Assembly: GCA_002794465.1 (NCBI GenBank)
Contig: MTSL01000134.1
Location: 107,830-120,280, forward strand
From: Paramicrosporidium saccamoebae KSL3
Taxonomy: Eukaryota; Fungi; Cryptomycota
Length of the DNA: 12,451 nucleotides
Direction of reading: 5' to 3'
Made by a program: the position numbers and the translations under genes. Of this stretch, positions 2,381 to 12,131 are shown in pieces; within the stretch, counting starts at the first letter, position 1, and each line of letters opens with the position of its first letter. The notes under the pieces were generated by a model that was given only the letters and a program-made list of their open reading frames with translations, searched no databases and was not told the DNA's origin.

Positions 2381-4720
2381 ATGTCACGGGCAGCGACAGT
2401 AGTGGCTCTCAACCAGATTTGCCGTATTGGGTCACTAATTGCATCGAACAAGGAATACCCGTGTCTTTGGGTACCCTCAAGGACAACATTGATGTCTTTA
2501 GATGAATTAGATAACCCACTTGTAAGAAATCCGTCTGCTGAGCCAGACGGCACTGTGAATCCAGGTTCGCTTCGCTGGGAATTCATAAAGAGGGATTTGA
2601 AGGAAAAAGAATCTGAATTTATCCGCTGGCAGGAGTACACGTTTCTGGTGGGCACTTGGAATATCAATGGACAGGAAGTGGGTGGTAGTTTGCTTCCGTG
2701 GTTACAACCTGGTCCCGACTCGCCGGACTTTGTGTTCATCACCCTGCAGGAGATGGATCGGAGGGCCGAGGCATTTGTTGTCTCAGTTAGCAGCAAGGAA
2801 GCCACTTGGAATGCCCTCTTGTTGCAAAACTTGCAAGTTGCATATCCAGATTTCAAGTATTCCCTGGTAACATCTCGCTCGTTGGTGGGTATCTATGCAG
2901 CCATGTTTGCAAAGGATGAACTTTTGCCATCCATCACCAACATCAGCTCTGCCACCGCAGCGTGCGGCATGATGGGTATGATGGGCAATAAAGGGGCCGC
3001 CGGGCTGCGTGTCAAGATTAAGCACGAGTACGTATGCTTTGTGGGATCACATTTGGCTCCTCATCTTGAAAATGTCTTGCGTCGCAACCAAGACTATGCT
3101 GACATTTCACGGCGCCTTTTGTTTCCGTCATCTGCCCGCGGCATCTACGAATCCACAAGTGAAGAGCTGCTACACACGTGGAGCGAAAGGTTCACACCTG
3201 CCACCATCTGGGATTGCGGAATACTAATTTGGGCTGGTGACCTGAATTACCGAATTTCCTGTCCTGCTCTTGAGACTAGAGATCTGGCCCTCTCGGGAAA
3301 TTACGATGAAATGCTAAAGGCGGATCAGCTGGGTAAAGAGATTGAGGCTGGACGTGCATTTCAAAACTTTACAGAAGGCCTGATTAGCTTTGCGCCAAGC
3401 TACAAGTACGACACCGGGTCTGACTGCTTTGACTCTAAACCAGAGGGGCGGGCGCCTGCATATACGGACAGAATTTTATTTAGGAGAAGCGATCAATTAA
3501 CTCCTGTCAAGTATTACTCGGCAATGAGTCTCAAGAGTAGCGACCACAAGCCAGTGGGGTGTGTCCTCCGTGCCCAATGTCGGGTTATCAACACGAATGG
3601 CTTTGAGTCGGCTCTCTCAGAAACGCTTCGTAAGGTGGACGTCTTTGAAAATGAAGCAATGCCAATAACTGTTGTATCTGCAAACGTTCTCGACTTTGGC
3701 AGTGTAGTCTTTCAACGAGCAACCCGACGTTCTTTTGAAATTCTCAATACTGGCCATGTAGTGGCAAGGTTCAGCTTTGTCCCACGTCCCCAGCAAAATG
3801 GCATATCGGCTCCCTGGATTCACATTCAGCCTCATCGAGGGATTGTTTTACCCGGTATAGGCTGTTGACCAATTCGCCTAACGCGCTTTTAGGCTCTTCG
3901 GCTGAGATTCAAGTTTATCTGTCCATTGACAAAGATGCAGCCAGTCAGATGAACGCAGGTCAGGCCGCTCCCGAAGACGTTCTCATCCTCCACGTCGACA
4001 GCGGACGTGACCACTTTATAAGTATCGAAGGACAGTTCCGTAAAACGCCCTTCTGTCTATCTTTGGATGAGTTATTCAACAACGACTACATTGTGAGACT
4101 TGCAAATGTACAGGGCGAAGAGTTTTTCTTCCGCGGGATTCCAAAGCCTGTCACGAGACTTGTAGAATTTCTGGTGCAACATGGAAAAACCGTGCCAAAC
4201 CTGTTCCTCGAGTCAGGACAAGCCGAGATGCTTCGCGCTATACAAGACGCTATAGATGCCGACGAGCCGTTGTCTGGTGAGTTGTGCACAGATATCGGCT
4301 TGTATTCTGTGGCTGAGACTTTGTTGAGATTTTTGGACACCCTTAGGCAGCCGGTCATTCCGTTTGGCTTTTTCGCGCGATGTATGGAAAGTTACAACAG
4401 TGCCGGTGCAGCTCTAGAGGTTATATTTTCTCAAACAGGCGCATTTACTCGTAGTTGGTTGACGAATTACCGCCGATACACTTGCAAGTCTTTGAATACC
4501 TAAGGGTGTTCATACGTGATATTATACTTCCCGCTAACACGAGCTTAAGGGCAGAGGATTTATGTATTGCGCTAGGCTATGGCTTACCTGTTTAGCCGCA
4601 GTTTTCGGAAAGGTCCTTGTGAAGCCTCCACCACGACCGACGACCCTGAACAAGGAGTACCGGCAAATAGACCAGAAACGAGCAGTATTCCTGCTACACT
4701 TTTATACTACATTCATTTGA
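2381..4720 (+). CDS. OCRL: OCRL/INPP5B-family inositol polyphosphate 5-phosphatase (5-phosphatase + ASH + RhoGAP-like). Exons 2381-3854, 3893-4419, 4455-4563, 4596-4720, ~744 aa. 5' end uncertain.
   Basis: Catalytic motifs GTWNING, WAGDLNYRI, FAPSYKYD, PAYTDRILF and SDHKPV. ASH: FEILNTGHVVARFSFVP and EDVLILHVDSGRDHFISIEG. RhoGAP-like: IPKPVTRLVEFL, SVAETLLRFLDTLRQPVIP, ELPPIHLQVFEYL, AVFGKVLVKPP. Three GT-AG introns restore one frame to TGA at 4718-4720. Confidence 0.92.
2471..2501 (+). other. Candidate 31-nt intron linking upstream frame (ATG 2326/2341) to the OCRL main frame
   Basis: GTACCC...TTGAT...TTTAG. Removing it gives ..IPVSL-D-ELDNPLVR in frame. Size matches the other introns, but the unspliced ATG-2381 model is equally open. 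Confidence 0.35.
3855..3892 (+). other. Spliceosomal intron, 38 nt (OCRL)
   Basis: GTATAG donor, CTAAC branch motif at 3878-3882, TTTTAG acceptor. Joins IVLP-G-SSAEIQV inside the ASH domain and removes stop TGA 3866-3868. Confidence 0.93.
4420..4454 (+). other. Spliceosomal intron, 35 nt (OCRL)
   Basis: GTTATA...TTTAC...CGTAG. Joins AALE to LVDELPPIH, restoring RhoGAP homology. Confidence 0.85.
4564..4595 (+). other. Spliceosomal intron, 32 nt (OCRL)
   Basis: GTATTG...CTTAC...TTTAG. Joins RAEDL-S-AVFGKVLVKPP and removes an in-frame TAG. Confidence 0.88.
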
Positions 4721-4741
4721 TTTTGTTATATATGGGGGGGC

Positions 4742-4953
4742 ACCAGTCAGACTGCACAGCGTCCCTGCCGTTGGATGGAATAATCCAAGGCACGGTCATC
4801 AAGCAGACACCTCGACCAAGGTCGAGGACATCTGCAGCTTCGCTCTCAGGACACCGCGCTATCCATCCTCATCCTGGTTGGTTTCATGCTCTTTGATTAT
4901 GATGTCAAAGAGGAATATCTACTGTACACATGATCCTGTAGAGTACAGTCGAT
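4742..4953 (-). ncRNA. U3: U3 snoRNA (box C/D, ~212 nt, intronless)
   Basis: Minus strand reads ATCGACTGTACTCTACAGGATCA (GAC box, box A', box A). CAGGAUCA is complementary to the conserved 18S 5' UGAUCCUG. Then a CTCTTTGA..TCAAAGAG hairpin, box C' GATGAGGA (4873-4866), box B GAGAGCGA (4847-4840), a ~15-bp hairpin (including CCTCGACC/GGTCGAGG), box C TGATGA (4801-4796) and box D CTGA (4750-4747). Terminal stem ACCAG (4878-4874)/CTGGT (4746-4742). Box order and length match known U3 RNAs. Confidence 0.95.
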
Positions 4954-4977
4954 ACTGTCCCTGGGCTGCAGCCCTGG

Positions 4978-4984
4978 TTTTATA
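4978..4984 (-). promoter_or_regulatory. TATA box of U3 (TATAAAA at -31)
   Basis: TATAAAA starts 31 nt upstream of the predicted U3 5' end (4953). Confidence 0.75.
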
Positions 4985-6176: not shown

Positions 6177-7865
6177 CTAACAGGATGTAGTAAAATCTAC
6201 AAAATTGGCAGAATTGTCCGTTCCAATAGCAACTATAACATTTCCGGACGGCCAAAATTCACAGCCAAGAAAGCGCTTCTCGCCGCTAAATTCTATCGAC
6301 CGTACTGGAGCGGCTGCCTCGTTCATGTACCTCAGATCCCATATATTGACCGCAGAGATGCGGGAATCTGGTGCAGAGGTTCCAAAGGCAACAAGATTGC
6401 CGTCAGGGGACCAACCCGGACGCATGTACCGTGTGGGAGATTGTTCAGCATGTCCAAACGCTTTAAATCCTTGCCCAAGAGGGCCCCGGTGGTCCAAGAG
6501 ACGTAGCTGCTGCGATCGGCTGCAAAAAGTGACTATAATGCTATTTGGATGGTGAGCATTGGTGAGCAGCTGTGAAATGCGAAACTCGTATCGATGGCTG
6601 AATGTTGGACGAGACTCTTTCAACGACCATCCCAACAGCCGACAATCGGCTCCGCCGCTCCATAGAATTTCGGGAGACGCGGCTACTTGCGTTATTGCCT
6701 GGACAGCAGATGTATGATAGCGATGGACTTCCTTTGTACTGGTCACATGAGCCTGGTAATCCAATTCCCATAGAGTGATAGTCTTGTCTAGCCCTCCCGA
6801 CAGCAACTTTGCCCGGTTCGACCGCATCGGCTCATATAGAGAGCTGAGTGTACTTATACTCTTCTGATGAGGTGAGTTGGCTGAAGTGAGCACTATTGGC
6901 ACTGGCTCTGAATCGTGCCGGTATGGCAAAAATAGCAAAGATGACGCTTGACCTGAGGAGTCTGTCTCTACACTGCTACCATTTGATGTGCTAGCATCTA
7001 CAGTGGAAAATACAAATCCATCTAATAATGGCGCAGAGCACATATTTTCAGGAAAGCATGGTCTTTTCAAATAGGACGGTAGAAATACTGTGCGAGTTGT
7101 CATCTGTTTTCGGACAGAATTGTACTGAACAGAACCATCTAGGGAGGACGTAATCATTAAATCGTCATGTCCAGCACCAGCAAACATCAGGCATCTGGGC
7201 TTTCGAACGAAAAACTTTGTTTTAATCGCCACTGACACATCTCGGATCAGTCCTTTATCTCCACTCAAATTCTTCGGTTTGGTCTCTGACAGCATGGGAG
7301 AGTTTAATTCAGTGAGCCTTGGGAGAGCATCAAGAGATTTTTTCGGCATGGGAGAATTCAATTCATTAAACCTTGGAAGGGCATCAAGGGACTTTGTCGA
7401 TATGGAAGAGTTTGGTTCATTAAGTCTTGTAAGAGGATCAAGAGACATGGATTGGGCAGTGGACCCAAATTCTCGCGATAGACATTCCATAGAGTCGCTC
7501 TCAAGAAGAACAGTAAGCTCACCCATCAGCACGCTAATTCGTTCAAAGCTTTTAGCCGCAGCCGAAGTATGCATAGTATACAGTTCGCGCTCCTTTTCTA
7601 GCTCAAGTTGGATAGCACGGAAACGAGGATTAGGCGAGGATAACGAGCCCCGTGACGCTGGTGCCGACCTGATGGAGGGAGACATGGAAGTTCTATCTAG
7701 TAGCGGGGAGGCAGTCCTCTTCCCAGGGACAGTAGAGCGAGAAGGCTGTCCGACTAGAGCCGCTCTTTTAGTCGATGAATCAGATAGGTGAGGCTTCTCC
7801 GTTTTGCCCGAAATTGGGACCAGCATGCTGGAGCCGAGAAGCTCATCGGGAAAGGACAAATTCAT
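6177..7865 (-). CDS. Uncharacterised protein, 562 aa: low-complexity N-terminus, short predicted coiled coil, 18-aa x3 repeat, C-terminal WD40 propeller
   Basis: WD40-like units TSSLDGSVQY, LLSGGLDKTITLW, HTSAV..WSGGADCRLLGW, QLRLLDHR and WSPDGNLVAFG..NIWDLRY. The track start at 7904 is GTG; the first ATG is 7865. Confidence 0.88.
   Translation of the reverse strand: MNLSFPDELLGSSMLVPISGKTEKPHLSDSSTKRAALVGQPSRSTVPGKRTASPLLDRTSMSPSIRSAPASRGSLSSPNPRFRAIQLELEKERELYTMHTSAAAKSFERISVLMGELTVLLESDSMECLSREFGSTAQSMSLDPLTRLNEPNSSISTKSLDALPRFNELNSPMPKKSLDALPRLTELNSPMLSETKPKNLSGDKGLIRDVSVAIKTKFFVRKPRCLMFAGAGHDDLMITSSLDGSVQYNSVRKQMTTRTVFLPSYLKRPCFPENMCSAPLLDGFVFSTVDASTSNGSSVETDSSGQASSLLFLPYRHDSEPVPIVLTSANSPHQKSISTLSSLYEPMRSNRAKLLSGGLDKTITLWELDYQAHVTSTKEVHRYHTSAVQAITQVAASPEILWSGGADCRLLGWSLKESRPTFSHRYEFRISQLLTNAHHPNSIIVTFCSRSQQLRLLDHRGPLGQGFKAFGHAEQSPTRYMRPGWSPDGNLVAFGTSAPDSRISAVNIWDLRYMNEAAAPVRSIEFSGEKRFLGCEFWPSGNVIVAIGTDNSANFVDFTTSC
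7292..7446 (-). repeat. 54-nt (18-aa) coding tandem repeat, ~3 copies
   Basis: SLDPLTRLNEPNSSISTK / SLDALPRFNELNSPMPKK / SLDALPRLTELNSPMLSE. DNA units start at 7292, 7346 and 7400 on the + strand. Confidence 0.9.
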
Positions 7866-7897: not shown

Positions 7898-7932
7898 GTC
7901 CCACAATTCCCCGACTCTGGCTAGGGTATAAA
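7898..7932 (+). promoter_or_regulatory. Candidate snoRNA promoter: GTCCCACAATTCC (7898-7910) plus TATAAA (7927-7932)
   Basis: The same two-element arrangement is seen upstream of U3, and it lies ~30-40 nt before the box C/D RNA. Confidence 0.5.
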
Positions 7933-7965
7933 GCACTGGAGACCCTGGTACTTTTTCGATTTGTA

Positions 7966-8106
7966 ACTGACCTTCACAAGGTTTTAGTGGCCAAGGATGA
8001 GTACGAACGTGCGGTATGACTGTGTCCTCGGCATATGTCTATGCCTTTGGTGTATTCGTATTGCCTAGTAGGATACCACTGGAGATACAAGTCTCTGAGG
8101 CCACTA
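7966..8106 (+). ncRNA. Box C/D snoRNA with 5' leader; candidate U13/snR45 (18S helix-45 ac4C guide). 5' end approximate (7958-7968).
   Basis: Perfect 8-bp terminal stem TAGTGGCC (7985-7992)/GGCCACTA (8099-8106), 3-nt bulge AAG, box C GATGA (7996-8000) and box D TCTGA (8094-8098): canonical kink-turn geometry. Internal stems TACGAA/TTCGTA and GGCATA/TATGCC. Leader TGACCTTCACAAGGTTT pairs with the conserved 18S 3' sequence GAACCUGCGGAAGGAUCA. T5 at 8111-8115. Confidence 0.7.
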
Positions 8107-8277
8107 CCCATTTTTAACAAAATCAACTGTTCGCGAGTACTACCTGCACGTCAGTGTATTATGCATGTGTATTGGCTATTGTCTCAATAAACTCGTTACT
8201 TCTTGTCATAGTAAAGTGCGGATGTCTTTCTGAATATTACAAAAATATGAACCCTTGTTAATTGGCACCGTTTTCGA

Positions 8278-11200
8278 ATGTTGGGCGGTGGACTGTCAGG
8301 AGGTCATGACTCGGAAAACCGTGCCGCCCAATTGAGACAAAGCGCGCGCACAGTTACTGCATGCCTTACAAGAGACGAACAACAGATACCTGACCCATGG
8401 GATCTTTTACAATCCTCGTACTCTCGAGACTACCTCCCGCCAGGTAGCGCGGGAGAAATGCATCTTCAAGTTCGCCAGGTCCATGTGATACCTGATATCC
8501 TTATGGCCCAATTCGAAGGACAAGAGTGTCGTTGCTTTATGGGACTATTTGCTCAAATTGGCCGCGTATGGATGACTGTGGACAATAGGCTGTTCCTGTG
8601 GGATTATGCCACTGGGCGCGATTATACCTGTTTCGACGAACTGGATCAAGTAATCATTGATGTGGCGTTGGTAAAGCCCAGAGCTGACATTTTCATTTCA
8701 TCCATCAAGCACCTGCTTGTAGTAGTTACTGCCGCAGAAATTGTCATTCTTGGAGTCTCCTTCAATTCTTCGGGAGCTGAGACTGAAGGCGACCTGGTTA
8801 TCCATCGCACCGGACTGCACTTTCCAAGCGACGAAATAAACATGCTCTCGGTCGTTGGAACGAGAACTGGACGAATATTTGCTGGAGGACAGGATGGGAA
8901 TATATACGAATTTACTTACCAGTCTGACGAGGGCTGGTTCACTCGGAAATGCCGAAAAGTCAACAAAACCTCTTCAGCATTGGCTTACTTGACTCCTACT
9001 TTTCTTCGCATGGCGCAGTCTGGTTCGGCTATTGTGTCACTGGCCTTTGATGCTGGCAGGGATTTGCTGTATGCTCTTGGAGAGGATTCCTCTATTCAAG
9101 CGTTCCATTTGGGGAAATTTGACAATGCTTTTGACAAGATTGGACATGCATCGGATATATTTGAAAGGGCCTCAAGTCTCTGTCCCACTGGCGTGCTAAA
9201 CAAAAAGTCATTCAAGGTGGCGGCAATTTCTGCAGTGGGGCTAGAGGATTCCGCATTTGTTCATCTAGTGGCCATCACTACGTGTGGAATCAAGTTGTAT
9301 TTTACAACTTTGAAAAGAGACGAGAGGGCTTATTCGAGGAATCAGATCATTGCCTCATCAAGCCTCCCTGTAACGTTTGAAATGATCCATGTGCGGCTTC
9401 CAGCCGAGGAGGGAAGACAGCGAGATGCTCGACGGATGTTTAATGCATGGAATCCCAATATTCACACCGCCTTGTATCGAAATGGAGTCATGCTGGCAGC
9501 CAGTGCAATTAGTAACCAAGAAGACATTGTGCTTGCCACGATTCTGAACCAGTCCGTTGCCATGACTTCGGGTAGAGGAGGCTCATTGGAATGTGTCTCT
9601 GAAGTCAAGATTGAGGGCAAAATCTGGGACATTGCTGAGCTCTCCCAACCCGAATGCAGCACGGTTCCAAAGGTATCGGCTTCCTTCCACGAAGCCACGT
9701 CCCCTCTTGTCACTCAATTTCGTCGCTTTTTGCTTCTCTCCAATTCTGGTGTCTATTCTGTTTCAAAATCTAGTCCCGTTGAAGAGTTGCAAAAACTTTT
9801 AGTCGACTCTAATGGTAATATGGAGAGTGAACATCTCCGCCATTTCTTCGAGTCCTATTCTGCCGACCAAGGCTGCTTCTTGTCAATAGTTTTGGCGTGC
9901 TCGGTGCAAAGTTCTTGGAAGTCTTTTGGCTCTTCCTCCTACCGTCCAAGTATGGACTCAAAGACGTCTGCCAATCTTGCTCTCTGGTCAGTCAATGCCA
10001 TGATCCGGCACGGAGGTGAACCGCGTGTTGCCCAAACGGCCATATCCGGCGTGGACTATATCGGCACGGGGAGTGTTCTGAACTTTCCTACCTATGGTAG
10101 TAGAATTGAGTACGAATTCTCAAATCTTCATCGTGGTCTTTACTTGTATTTTGCACGTCTTGTTGGGTCTTTCTGGAATCAGCCTGTTCAATCCTTCTCA
10201 GAGCCACAAACTGATATCCTGATGGCCCTTCATTCGTATTGCGAATTTCTTGAACGAAATCCCGGCCTTGCGTCCCGCACTCTGTTGACTTCTAACGCAC
10301 CCGCCAAGCACATTGTTTCACGAGAAATCCAGATGAAACTCGACGAAGCCTACAACGCTGAGAATCAGTCCATTAGAACGCTAGTTTGGCTAGTCAAGGC
10401 TACTCTGGAGCTCTTGTCCTTCCTGTCCATCTGTCGCGACTATCATATCCTGGAGCCTGCCTTGAGATCAAGCCACGATATTCAAAAAATTGAATTTGAA
10501 GAATTAATCGCAACACCCAGAGGACGCGATCTCGTTTCAGACATTGCCACGGCCTTGGTGCAAAAGCAGCTTAAAATGCGTGCGTCTGTGGATTCATTGT
10601 GTCAAATTCTACTGCAAAGGTGTCCCACATTCTTTGGGGAGGGCGAAATTGTCATATTCCAGGGCACTGAGTGTCTGGAGCGCGCACTCCAAACGCGAGA
10701 CTCGGCGGAACGCAATTTACAGCTTCAGGAATCCTTAAAACTTTTCCTCCGTGGATGCTCCTCAATGTCGCTTGCGACATTGTCCGAGATTTCTCAAAAG
10801 TACCAGAGCTTAGCTTTTTTCCCTGGCCTGATCGAGCTTGGCCTGTGTTCCGCCCAATCCCGTGATACCGACAATATTGCATTGGCCGCTTTCCGCGCGC
10901 CCAACATTCAGCTCAATACACAGCAGCAAGAAATTATCAACTCTCGGGAAGGGATCTATTCCTTTATTTTCGAAGCGCTCAAAGCCGTGCACGGAATCGA
11001 AGCACGAAGCATTTCTGCGCTCGTGGGGCAAATTGGTACTTTTGTCTTTATTGTCTTTATGGTTTAGATGTTGAAAGGTTACAAAAGGAGACCCTTGGTC
11101 GTGCGGTTAAATCAAGGGACGAGCTTTTCCATCTAAAGCTGTATGATTGGATGGTTTCAGAGCATTTGGGTTCGCTTCTTCTTGATATGGAGACTCCATA

Positions 11201-12131
11201 CTTGCTCGCGTATCTGGAATCGAGATTTTTGGATCATTCTGAGGCTTGCAGAGATTTGCTATGGAAGTATTTAGCCCGACATGGTCGGTTTATTGATGCG
11301 GCAAAGATCCTTGATCAGCTGGCTTCGTCTCCCGAATTCAAATTGAATCTGCCAGAAAGAATTGAACGACTTTCCTTGGCATTGGGAAATGCTAGGAGTG
11401 AGGCTGGAATGACTCTGGAGGCTGCAGAATATATTCAAGACTTGGAGGAAAGGCTGGACGTTGCAAAACTCCAAAACGAAGTTCTTGAACACGTTCTGTC
11501 GCATTTTGGGCAGGTTGCCGAAGTTACCGAACTGAATTGTGTTCTTTTCGACATTTCCCAGCTGTTTAATCGTTTCACTCGTCCCCTCAAACTATACGAG
11601 TGCTCTTTGCGAATTATCCATTCATCGTCATACCAGGATCCGCTCCTTGTACATCAGTTTTGGTCAAGCATTCTGGCTCAGACCGGGAAGCACTTTGACT
11701 CTCTGTCTCAAAAGATTGCTGAACTGGCAAAGAAGCTTTACCCGTCTCCTTTTGCTTTTCCATTAAGTATGAAACGCCGTTGCATGTTTAATATCTTTGT
11801 AGACTTTGTGCTGGACTCGGTTCTTGTACTTGCGATAAAAAACTCGCAATCTGAAGAGTGGGTTGCATCGACATTTATTCATTCCGGCATCCCACCAAAA
11901 GATGTCTTGGAGCAATTCTGCGAGTTTGCTCACTCGCAGTCAACGTTTTGGTCCAATGTGGAGAATAGAGCGTTCCTCGTTTCTGTATTTAGTAGCTTGG
12001 CCGACAGAGCCCTCACTAGGCAACTAATCAAGGGAGCTGATCTTTCCATGATCATTAACTTTCTTCTGAAAAGCTCAATTCCAGAATCGCAATCGTCAAA
12101 AATAGCTCTACTTAAGGATCGATGCAAATAA
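8278..12131 (+). CDS. NUP155: Nucleoporin Nup155/Nup170 family. Exons 8278-11035, 11068-11766, 11803-12131, ~1261 aa.
   Basis: CFMGLFAQIGRVWMTVDNRLFLWDY, GRIFAGGQDGNIYEFTYQ..GWFTRKCRKVN, IYFTT-like IKLYFTT, HRGLYLYFARL, DELFHLKLYDWM (restored by splicing), DLLWKY and LPERIERLSLA are all typical of Nup155/170. Confidence 0.95.
11036..11067 (+). other. Spliceosomal intron, 32 nt (NUP155)
   Basis: GTACTT...TTTAG. Joins GQI-D-VERLQKETLGRAVKSRDELFH and fuses the two track ORFs. Confidence 0.92.
11767..11802 (+). other. In-frame stop-free intron, 36 nt (NUP155)
   Basis: GTATGA donor, TTTAAT branch-like motif, TGTAG acceptor. Removal turns FPLSMKRRCMFNIFVDFVL into FPLNFVL, matching the family FPL(D/N)F motif. 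Confidence 0.8.

Follow-up and report, generated by a model that had tools for sequence, protein, structure and literature searches.

A box C/D snoRNA gene of Paramicrosporidium saccamoebae that is probably a rozellid counterpart of snR45 and U13 reduced to its 5' guide

Introduction

In yeast, the snoRNA snR45 guides the formation of ac4C1773 in 18S rRNA. Sharma et al. (2017) determined that a first guide sequence (GS1, nts 1-15) pairs with 18S positions 1781-1798 and that a second (GS2, nts 120-127) pairs with positions 1760-1767; mutation of GS1 abolishes ac4C1773 and mutation of GS2 cuts acetylation by 82%. The sequence of yeast snR45 can be read from the oligonucleotides in S2 Table of that study (AUGACCUUCCAAGUUUUUAAAGAAUACGAUGA...GAUCUUGUUAC...AUUCUGAUUCUUUUU), and the RNA carries AAUGGAGAUA at the position that was named box C' by Dudnakova et al. 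In human SNORD13 (U13) the 5' element is likewise the most important one, and Drosophila SNORD13 functions with one antisense element. A survey of fungal snoRNAs recovered the snR45 family in the Saccharomycetaceae only, and the surveys of SNORD13 have been centred on animals and plants.

Here we describe a snoRNA gene of Paramicrosporidium saccamoebae, a member of the Rozellomycota for which a full-text literature search found no paper on snoRNAs. The gene lies at positions 7966-8106 of the plus strand of a 12,451-nucleotide stretch of genomic DNA, which is called the window in the following, and coordinates refer to this window and strand unless noted otherwise; rRNA positions use yeast numbering. 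We will examine the conservation of the gene and of its flanking signals, the pairing of its 5' leader with 18S rRNA, the loss of the second guide, and the functions that could explain an additional invariant element. Individual syntenic loci and contigs are denoted by L numbers.

The snoRNA gene and its orthologues

The snoRNA is 141 nt long and reads ACUGACCUUCACAAGGUUUUAGUGGCCAAGGAUGAGUAC...CUCUGAGGCCACUA. It is flanked by a WD40 gene on the minus strand, which ends at 7904, and by a Nup170-like gene, which starts at 8278 and leaves 170 bp between the snoRNA and the downstream ORF. The ORF list of the window contains no ORF of 80 aa or more that overlaps the snoRNA region. Homologues of the Nup170-like protein gave access to syntenic loci, which come from unannotated assemblies and metagenomes. 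In 14 further loci an orthologue of the snoRNA occupies the syntenic site; these comprise eight close and six more distant uncultured relatives. All eight close loci hold the snoRNA at the same place (nhmmer E values of 1e-34 to 1e-70). A covariance model was made from eight sequences and then run on the more distant loci; close relatives score 125-151 bits and distant relatives 22-63 bits (62.9 for L159/L160, 35 for L162, 29.6 for L163 and 22-24 for L157/L158).

The Nup170 locus of Coemansia has neither synteny nor a match to the snoRNA. A scan of metagenomes with the leader and box C pattern returned 28 matches, nearly all in bacterial coding sequence and none shown to be homologous. The matches on contigs L012/L022 and L033 are not obviously bacterial, and L033 has CCCTGGTC upstream of its match; none of these three contigs gave a covariance-model match at E values up to 10.

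The RNA is closed by a terminal stem in which UAGUGGCC (7985-7992) forms 8 bp with GGCCACUA (8099-8106). The initial annotation had described a textbook C/D closure with an 8-bp stem; the stem and both boxes are where it placed them, but box C (AGGAUGA, 7994-8000) is not quite textbook because its position 2 is G and not U. This box is invariant in the close orthologues and reads CUGAUGA or UUGAUGA in distant relatives, with C at position 2 in L159. Box D (CUGA, 8095-8098) is invariant. The length of 8 bp is peculiar to P. saccamoebae, and the conserved core of the stem is 5 bp, which is 92% paired in 12 sequences and shows a double change from G-C to A-U in distant relatives. The elements that make up the kink turn required in snR45/U13 guides, box C, box D and the terminal stem, are thus all present, the last with a compensatory change.

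A central hairpin (8022-8076), as predicted by RNAalifold, has a conserved base formed by GUGUCCUC and GUAGGAUAC and a variable top (8030-8067). It comprises 15 pairs, is 81% paired and has double changes at eight of the pairs. When the terminal stem and the central hairpin are taken together, 84% of the cells in the 12 sequences are paired as compared with 36-57% when the partners are slid, nine pairs show double changes, and none of 500 shuffles matches the covariation score. The folding energy of -47.5 kcal/mol (z = -2.5) is somewhat better than that of shuffled sequences. The hairpin is followed by a C'-like box, CUGGAGAU (8079-8086), in which CCnnUGGAGA is kept throughout the family with one substitution in L162 (CUGGUGA). 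The order of leader, stem, box C, central hairpin, C'-like UGGAGAUA, box D and stem matches the layout of snR45.

Putative promoter and 3'-end motifs shared with U3

A TATAAA box (7927-7932) lies upstream of the snoRNA and is followed by the promoter-proximal motif CCCTGG (7943-7948), of which CCC.GG is invariant in nine of nine close orthologues. The composite motif TATAAA-N(8-16)-CCCWGG has exactly two copies in the window, where 0.01 are expected. One is upstream of the snoRNA and the other (4960-4984) is upstream of the U3 snoRNA gene on the minus strand (4742-4952; Rfam RF00012, 78 bits). The promoter-proximal motif is also found in the form CCAGGG or CCCTGG upstream of the snoRNA in L159, L157 and L162, and again upstream of U3. 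Downstream, TAACAAAATCAA (8115-8126) begins 8 nt past the snoRNA; it too has exactly two copies in the window (0.13 expected), the second of which (4717-4728) is found 13 nt after U3, and it is probably a signal for 3'-end formation. A TAAnAAAAnnAA-like sequence is conserved downstream of the snoRNA in the close orthologues and recurs downstream in L157 and L162, and L159 has only the looser TAATAAAATAAA. Both of the shared motifs look like lineage-specific promoter and 3'-end signals of sn(o)RNA genes, and they could help to locate further sn(o)RNA genes in unannotated rozellid genomes.

The flanking sequences show a gene layout that is of the capped-snRNA type as judged from these motifs. 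Because the snoRNA is conserved in syntenic loci, its helices covary and its motifs are shared with U3, the comparative evidence identifies 7966-8106 as a genuine box C/D snoRNA gene that is predicted to be transcribed independently. Vertebrate and plant U13 is a capped and independently transcribed C/D RNA; for the Paramicrosporidium snoRNA a cap is likewise predicted. In U3 the T of the TATA box is located 32 nt before the 5' end of the RNA, and the same spacing would place the start of the snoRNA near 7959, so the leader may be about 8 nt longer than had been noted initially. The possible extra leader sequence, AUUUGUAAC (7959-7967), is partly conserved, and in some orthologues a UAA in this region lengthens the pairing to the UUA-3' of 18S rRNA.

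Pairing of the 5' leader with 18S helix 45

The 18S partner used for the pairing analysis was the real 3' end of S. cerevisiae 18S rRNA and not that of P. saccamoebae, and it was taken from contaminant contigs in prokaryotic assemblies. Against this partner the leader forms three helices, UGA with UCA (1795-1797), CCUUC with GAAGG (1789-1793) and AGGUUU with GAACCU (1780-1785), which amount to 3+5+6 = 14 pairs with GAACCU-GCG-GAAGG-A-UCA and leave one bulged A in 18S. The 8+6 pairs that had been proposed earlier for UGA-CCUUC-aca-AGGUUU are therefore confirmed against yeast 18S rRNA. RNAduplex gives -16.7 kcal/mol for this duplex, and RNAcofold predicts the same three helices.

The first part of the leader, here termed GS1a (UGACCUUC, 7968-7975), is antisense to 18S GAAGG(A)UCA (1789-1797) and invariant in nine orthologues. 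It is identical to nts 2-9 of yeast snR45; the yeast start given in the initial annotation, AUGACCUUCCAAGUUUUU, is readable in the S2 Table oligonucleotides of Sharma et al. (2017). The spacer ACA (7976-7978) is unpaired and opposite 18S GCG. Among the close orthologues it reads AC, AA, ACA, GCAA or UUUU, with 3-5 nt to AGGUUU, and this variability is as expected for an internal loop. The second part, GS1b (AGGUUU(U), 7979-7985), is antisense to 18S GAACCU (1780-1785) with six pairs, and AGGUUUU is present in every close orthologue, shifted in L008 by an insertion of 2 nt. The paired bases of the leader are exactly those that are invariant in the nine close orthologues. In the distant relatives the leader variants keep or improve the pairing to the 18S 3' end: the leader of L159, GAUCCUUC, is a perfect complement of GAAGGAUC without the bulge, that of L157, UAAUGAUUCUUC, extends the pairing to the last base of 18S, and that of L162, UAAUGCCUUC, pairs at least as well. 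Across all 12 lineages the energies of the leader/18S duplex are -15 to -21 kcal/mol.

The energy of the leader/18S duplex alone is unexceptional, as the same G+C-rich target is paired equally well by 437 (1.8%) of the 24,860 21-mers in the window. The case for the leader rests instead on its position as the leader of a C/D RNA, on invariant paired bases beside a variable spacer and on the identity with yeast snR45. On this comparative evidence the snoRNA has a 5' leader, predicted to be single-stranded, whose antisense match covers the 3' strand of helix 45 and continues to the 3' end of 18S rRNA.

During the search for 18S sequences, contigs with the exact eukaryotic 18S 3' end turned up in more than 120 assemblies that are deposited under bacterial or archaeal names (L037-L156), which represents contamination of public prokaryotic genomes. 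At least five of these assemblies carry S. cerevisiae rDNA as judged by the start of ITS1, and several others carry putative plant or Aspergillus rDNA. Viral contigs were also scanned for the 18S 3' end, and nothing was found.

Comparison with known acetylation guides

A scan of the snoRNA against Rfam, at gathering thresholds and at E values up to 10, gave no match to U13/SNORD13 or snR45. The sole match was to SNORD93 at chance level (15.9 bits, E value of 3.8); the similarity covers the stem and box C only, and an identity as SNORD93 was rejected. Scans of L157 and L159 returned nothing relevant.

Like yeast snR45, the Paramicrosporidium snoRNA is a box C/D RNA whose 5' leader precedes the terminal stem and is unpaired, and it probably has an independent gene, as snR45 does. 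The leaders of both RNAs share UGACCUUC...AAG(G)UUUU and pair with 18S 1780-1798, position 2 of box C is not U in either of them (ACGAUGA in yeast), and both have UGGAGAUA in the C' region. Unlike yeast snR45, which is 172 nt long, the snoRNA is 141 nt long, has no helix-plus-loop domain after C', lacks GAUCUUGUUAC (GS2) and contains an invariant GAACGUGCGGnAUGA past box C that yeast does not have. It is like vertebrate and plant U13 in its 5' antisense to the 3' strand of helix 45, which in U13 is provided by the elements 18S-A and 18S-B, and the sequence similarity to U13 is limited to this antisense part. Unlike the snoRNA, U13 has an internal element, 18S-C, that pairs with GUCGUAACAAGG, as well as three short stems, and no such element is present here.

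The dipteran SNORD13 (Or-CD1) is a naturally reduced acetylation guide that functions with a single antisense element. The two RNAs are mirror images of each other, since flies kept the internal element and lost the 5' element and the reverse is true of the Paramicrosporidium snoRNA. Yeast snR4, which guides ac4C1280 in helix 34 of 18S rRNA, is similar in snoRNP class and overall architecture, but the snoRNA has no complementarity to 18S 1264-1271 or 1286-1290, and the invariant element would pair next to the other strand of helix 34 (1456-1462) and not around C1280. A role at helix 34 like that of snR4 was rejected because the flanking complementarity is absent and the weak, G-U-rich pairing over 1263-1285 would pair C1280 itself.

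The missing second guide

A second guide similar to CUUGUUAC is absent from the snoRNA and from its eight close orthologues, which agrees with the initial annotation, where the 3' antisense element was reported as missing. The weak candidate named there, GCCUUUGGUGU, did not hold up; it falls within the variable top of the central hairpin, is not conserved and was ruled out as a second guide. Only 8-9 variable nt separate the C'-like box from box D. In P. saccamoebae this short spacer, ACAAGUCU (8087-8094), is the apparent site of the lost second guide and has no complementarity to 18S. Another candidate, UUUGUAAC (7960-7967), directly precedes the leader and resembles GS2, since 7 of its 8 positions can pair with 18S GUAACAAG. 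This candidate was rejected because it is not kept in L002, L003 and L008 and because the pairing would need a non-nested topology.

Remnants of 4-6 nt are found ahead of box D in distant relatives: CUUGUU in L162 (six pairs with 18S 1762-1767), UUUGUU in L157 and ACUGUU in L163 (four pairs). In L159 the 6-nt CUUGUU is located within CUUGUUUU in the central domain. Since the element is absent from the Paramicrosporidium clade and only short remnants are seen in the distant relatives, the second guide appears to be weak across the rozellid snoRNA family and gone from the Paramicrosporidium clade. In L157, ACGACU in the D'-guide position (7150-7162 of that locus) and UUUGUU ahead of box D (7236-7243) complement the adjacent halves AGUCGU and AACAAG of 18S 1756-1767. 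These two segments may be a split second guide, part of which may be retained in L163.

A search for a hidden second guide with RNAduplex was compared with shuffled sequences and gave 70 of 300 and 9 of 300 for the snoRNA, depending on the flank length. The same test applied to the proven yeast GS2 gave 22 of 300 and 88 of 300. As the proven guide does no better, the test has little power; RNAcofold likewise misses the yeast GS2.

An invariant element in the D'-guide position

The initial annotation missed the invariant GAACGUGCGGnAUGA in the D'-guide position. The D'-guide-like element, GAACGUGCGGU (8005-8015), is invariant and precedes a putative D'-like box, AUGA (8016-8019), in which AUGAC is invariant; relatives have UAGA, UCGA or AUGA. 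In the Paramicrosporidium clade and L159 an invariant GAACGUGCGGnAUGAC extends over 8005-8020, from 4 nt past box C to the hairpin. Ten lineages, L159 among them, have ACGUGCGG without variation; it is missing from L157, L162 and L163. When it is read as part of a C/D RNA, the element would be a D' guide with 15 nt from box C to AUGA that faces the C'-like UGGAGA. GAACGUGCGGnAUGA may replace the lost guide or may add a second function.

There are three candidate pairings of the invariant element, and none of them is statistically secure. In the first, CGUGCGG is a perfect 7-nt complement of 18S CCGCACG (1456-1462) with an energy of -15.9 kcal/mol. Of 24 diverse rDNA units, 20 contain this site, at about 1444-1459, and it is just 3' of the 3' strand of helix 34. 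Since roughly one in three random 7-mers is present in rRNA, the agreement is not significant. In the second, GAACGUGCGG is a sense copy, at 9 of 10 positions, of 18S 1780-1789 in the 3' strand of helix 45, a likeness that 8% of shuffles equal, and it could pair with the 5' strand of helix 45, CCGUAGGU (7 of 8 pairs, -10.0 kcal/mol). In the third, the 18S segments 1756-1762 and 1768-1771 are bound by UAUGACU and GAAC at -9.6 kcal/mol for the element by itself, or at -13.4 to -18.4 kcal/mol if the next helix strand is added, and the invariant core stays unpaired.

Because GAACGUGCGG is nearly a copy of the strand that the leader would sequester, a strand exchange is conceivable in which the leader takes the 3' strand of helix 45 and GAACGUGCGG re-pairs the freed 5' strand CCGUAGGU. 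We regard this as doubtful. If it were true, the CCG would be shown to Kre33 in a native-like helix and not in an open bubble, and the lost second guide would have been replaced by a mode of RNA-guided acetylation that is new.

Proposed function and alternatives

It is probable, although by no means certain, that the snoRNA is the rozellid counterpart of yeast snR45 and animal/plant U13 (SNORD13), reduced to its 5' guide. The identity with GS1 of snR45, the conservation of the leader, the absence of GS2 and the architecture all support its first description as a divergent or reduced acetylation guide, and Drosophila SNORD13 offers a precedent for guidance by one antisense element. In this model the leader would invade helix 45 during the assembly of the small subunit and hold the 3' strand, which would free the 5' strand with the CCG cytidine (C1773 in yeast). 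The snoRNP would then bring or position Kre33/NAT10 so that this cytidine is acetylated. The usual second guide, a clamp on the 5' side of the target (18S GUAACAAG), would have been lost in the Paramicrosporidium clade, so guidance would depend mainly on the leader. The sequence GAACGUGCGGn ahead of the D'-like AUGA could replace the clamp, for example by pairing with the freed 5' strand CCGUAGGU, or could give the RNA a second task in pairing with 18S CCGCACG next to helix 34.

Several observations stand against the assignment to snR45/U13. The snoRNA lacks the second antisense element, a defining feature of the family in yeast, vertebrates and plants, and in yeast the loss of GS2 lowers acetylation by 82%. 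The assignment also leaves the most conserved internal element unexplained, the energy of the leader/18S duplex is unremarkable by itself, and in P. saccamoebae a conserved site in 25S H92 scores slightly better than the 18S site as a partner of the leader (-19.4 versus -16.7 kcal/mol). The snoRNA therefore most likely works like snR45 but is not called a proven member of the family, both because of the missing element and because Rfam gives no match to U13/SNORD13 or snR45. A rozellid counterpart near the base of the fungi and beside the Microsporidia would support an ancient origin of snoRNA-guided acetylation of helix 45. A natural guide with only the 5' element, together with the fly guide with only the internal element, would bracket the minimal requirements for guiding Kre33/NAT10, and the clade-specific invariant element would provide a handle on how a lost guide segment is compensated.

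A rather unlikely alternative is that the RNA is mainly a 2'-O-methylation guide, in which GAACGUGCGGn and the D'-like AUGA would aim Nop1/fibrillarin at CCGCACG and the leader would be accessory, or the RNA bifunctional. The best conserved site is 18S 1456-1462, where the D'+5 rule points to C1459. No other part of the RNA is as conserved as this element, an invariant 8-10 nt. It occupies the canonical guide position 15 nt from box C to D' and has a perfect G+C-rich complement of 7-8 bp in the widely shared 18S site described above. However, 7 bp is shorter than the usual 10 or more, the D' and C' boxes are degenerate, and the element is missing from related RNAs that keep the leader. We also know of no methylation at the position equivalent to 18S C1459 in yeast or human, which counts against this function.

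It is unlikely that the snoRNA is a non-modifying chaperone or processing factor that binds the 18S 3' end and delays the folding of helix 45, its dimethylation or 3'-end cleavage, the acetylation itself possibly having been lost in a reduced parasite lineage as in C. elegans. Such a role would suit an RNA in which the 5' element alone is conserved and in several relatives reaches the last base of 18S, and it has been published that C. elegans is without 18S ac4C although NAT10 is present. Against it stands the strong similarity to a guide with a proven role in acetylation. There is also no precedent for such a role, since yeast snr4/snr45 mutants have no growth defect and the loss of human SNORD13 leaves pre-rRNA processing intact, as published.

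It is very improbable that the leader targets the conserved region of 25S H92 and the A-loop (UAGACCGUCGUGAGACAGGUUAG) and not 18S. By RNAduplex the H92 site is the better partner in P. saccamoebae, as given above, and in L003 (-18.9 kcal/mol), but there the variable spacer takes part in the duplex, the invariant UC is left out of it, and the energy falls to -7.6 to -13 kcal/mol in L157, L158 and L162, where the 18S pairing holds at -15 to -21 kcal/mol. H92 was ruled out as the target of the leader because the pairing is not conserved. Least probable of all is that there is no RNA gene and that the region is conserved promoter or regulatory DNA of the Nup170-like gene, as its position 170 bp upstream of that ORF would allow, in view of the compensatory changes in two helices, the C and D boxes, a TATA box of its own, the 5' and 3' motifs in common with U3, and the copies in L157 and L163, which lie about 2.7-3.3 kb ahead of the Nup170-like gene and are separated from it by other called genes.

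Other features of the window

The remainder of the window contains several protein-coding genes. A tyrosyl-tRNA synthetase with a C-terminal EMAPII-like tRNA-binding domain is encoded on the minus strand (241-1950). Its best named relatives are from animals and Capsaspora (55-68% identity), with no named fungal tyrosyl-tRNA synthetase among the best 120 matches. The ORF at 2381-3868 (plus strand) encodes an inositol 5-phosphatase of the OCRL/INPP5B type and is 100% identical to PSACC_01957 of P. saccamoebae, which establishes the origin of the window. The Nup170/Nup155-like gene consists of two ORFs on the plus strand (8278-11067 and 11151-12131), separated by a gap of 83 nt that probably reflects a short intron or, failing that, a frameshift.
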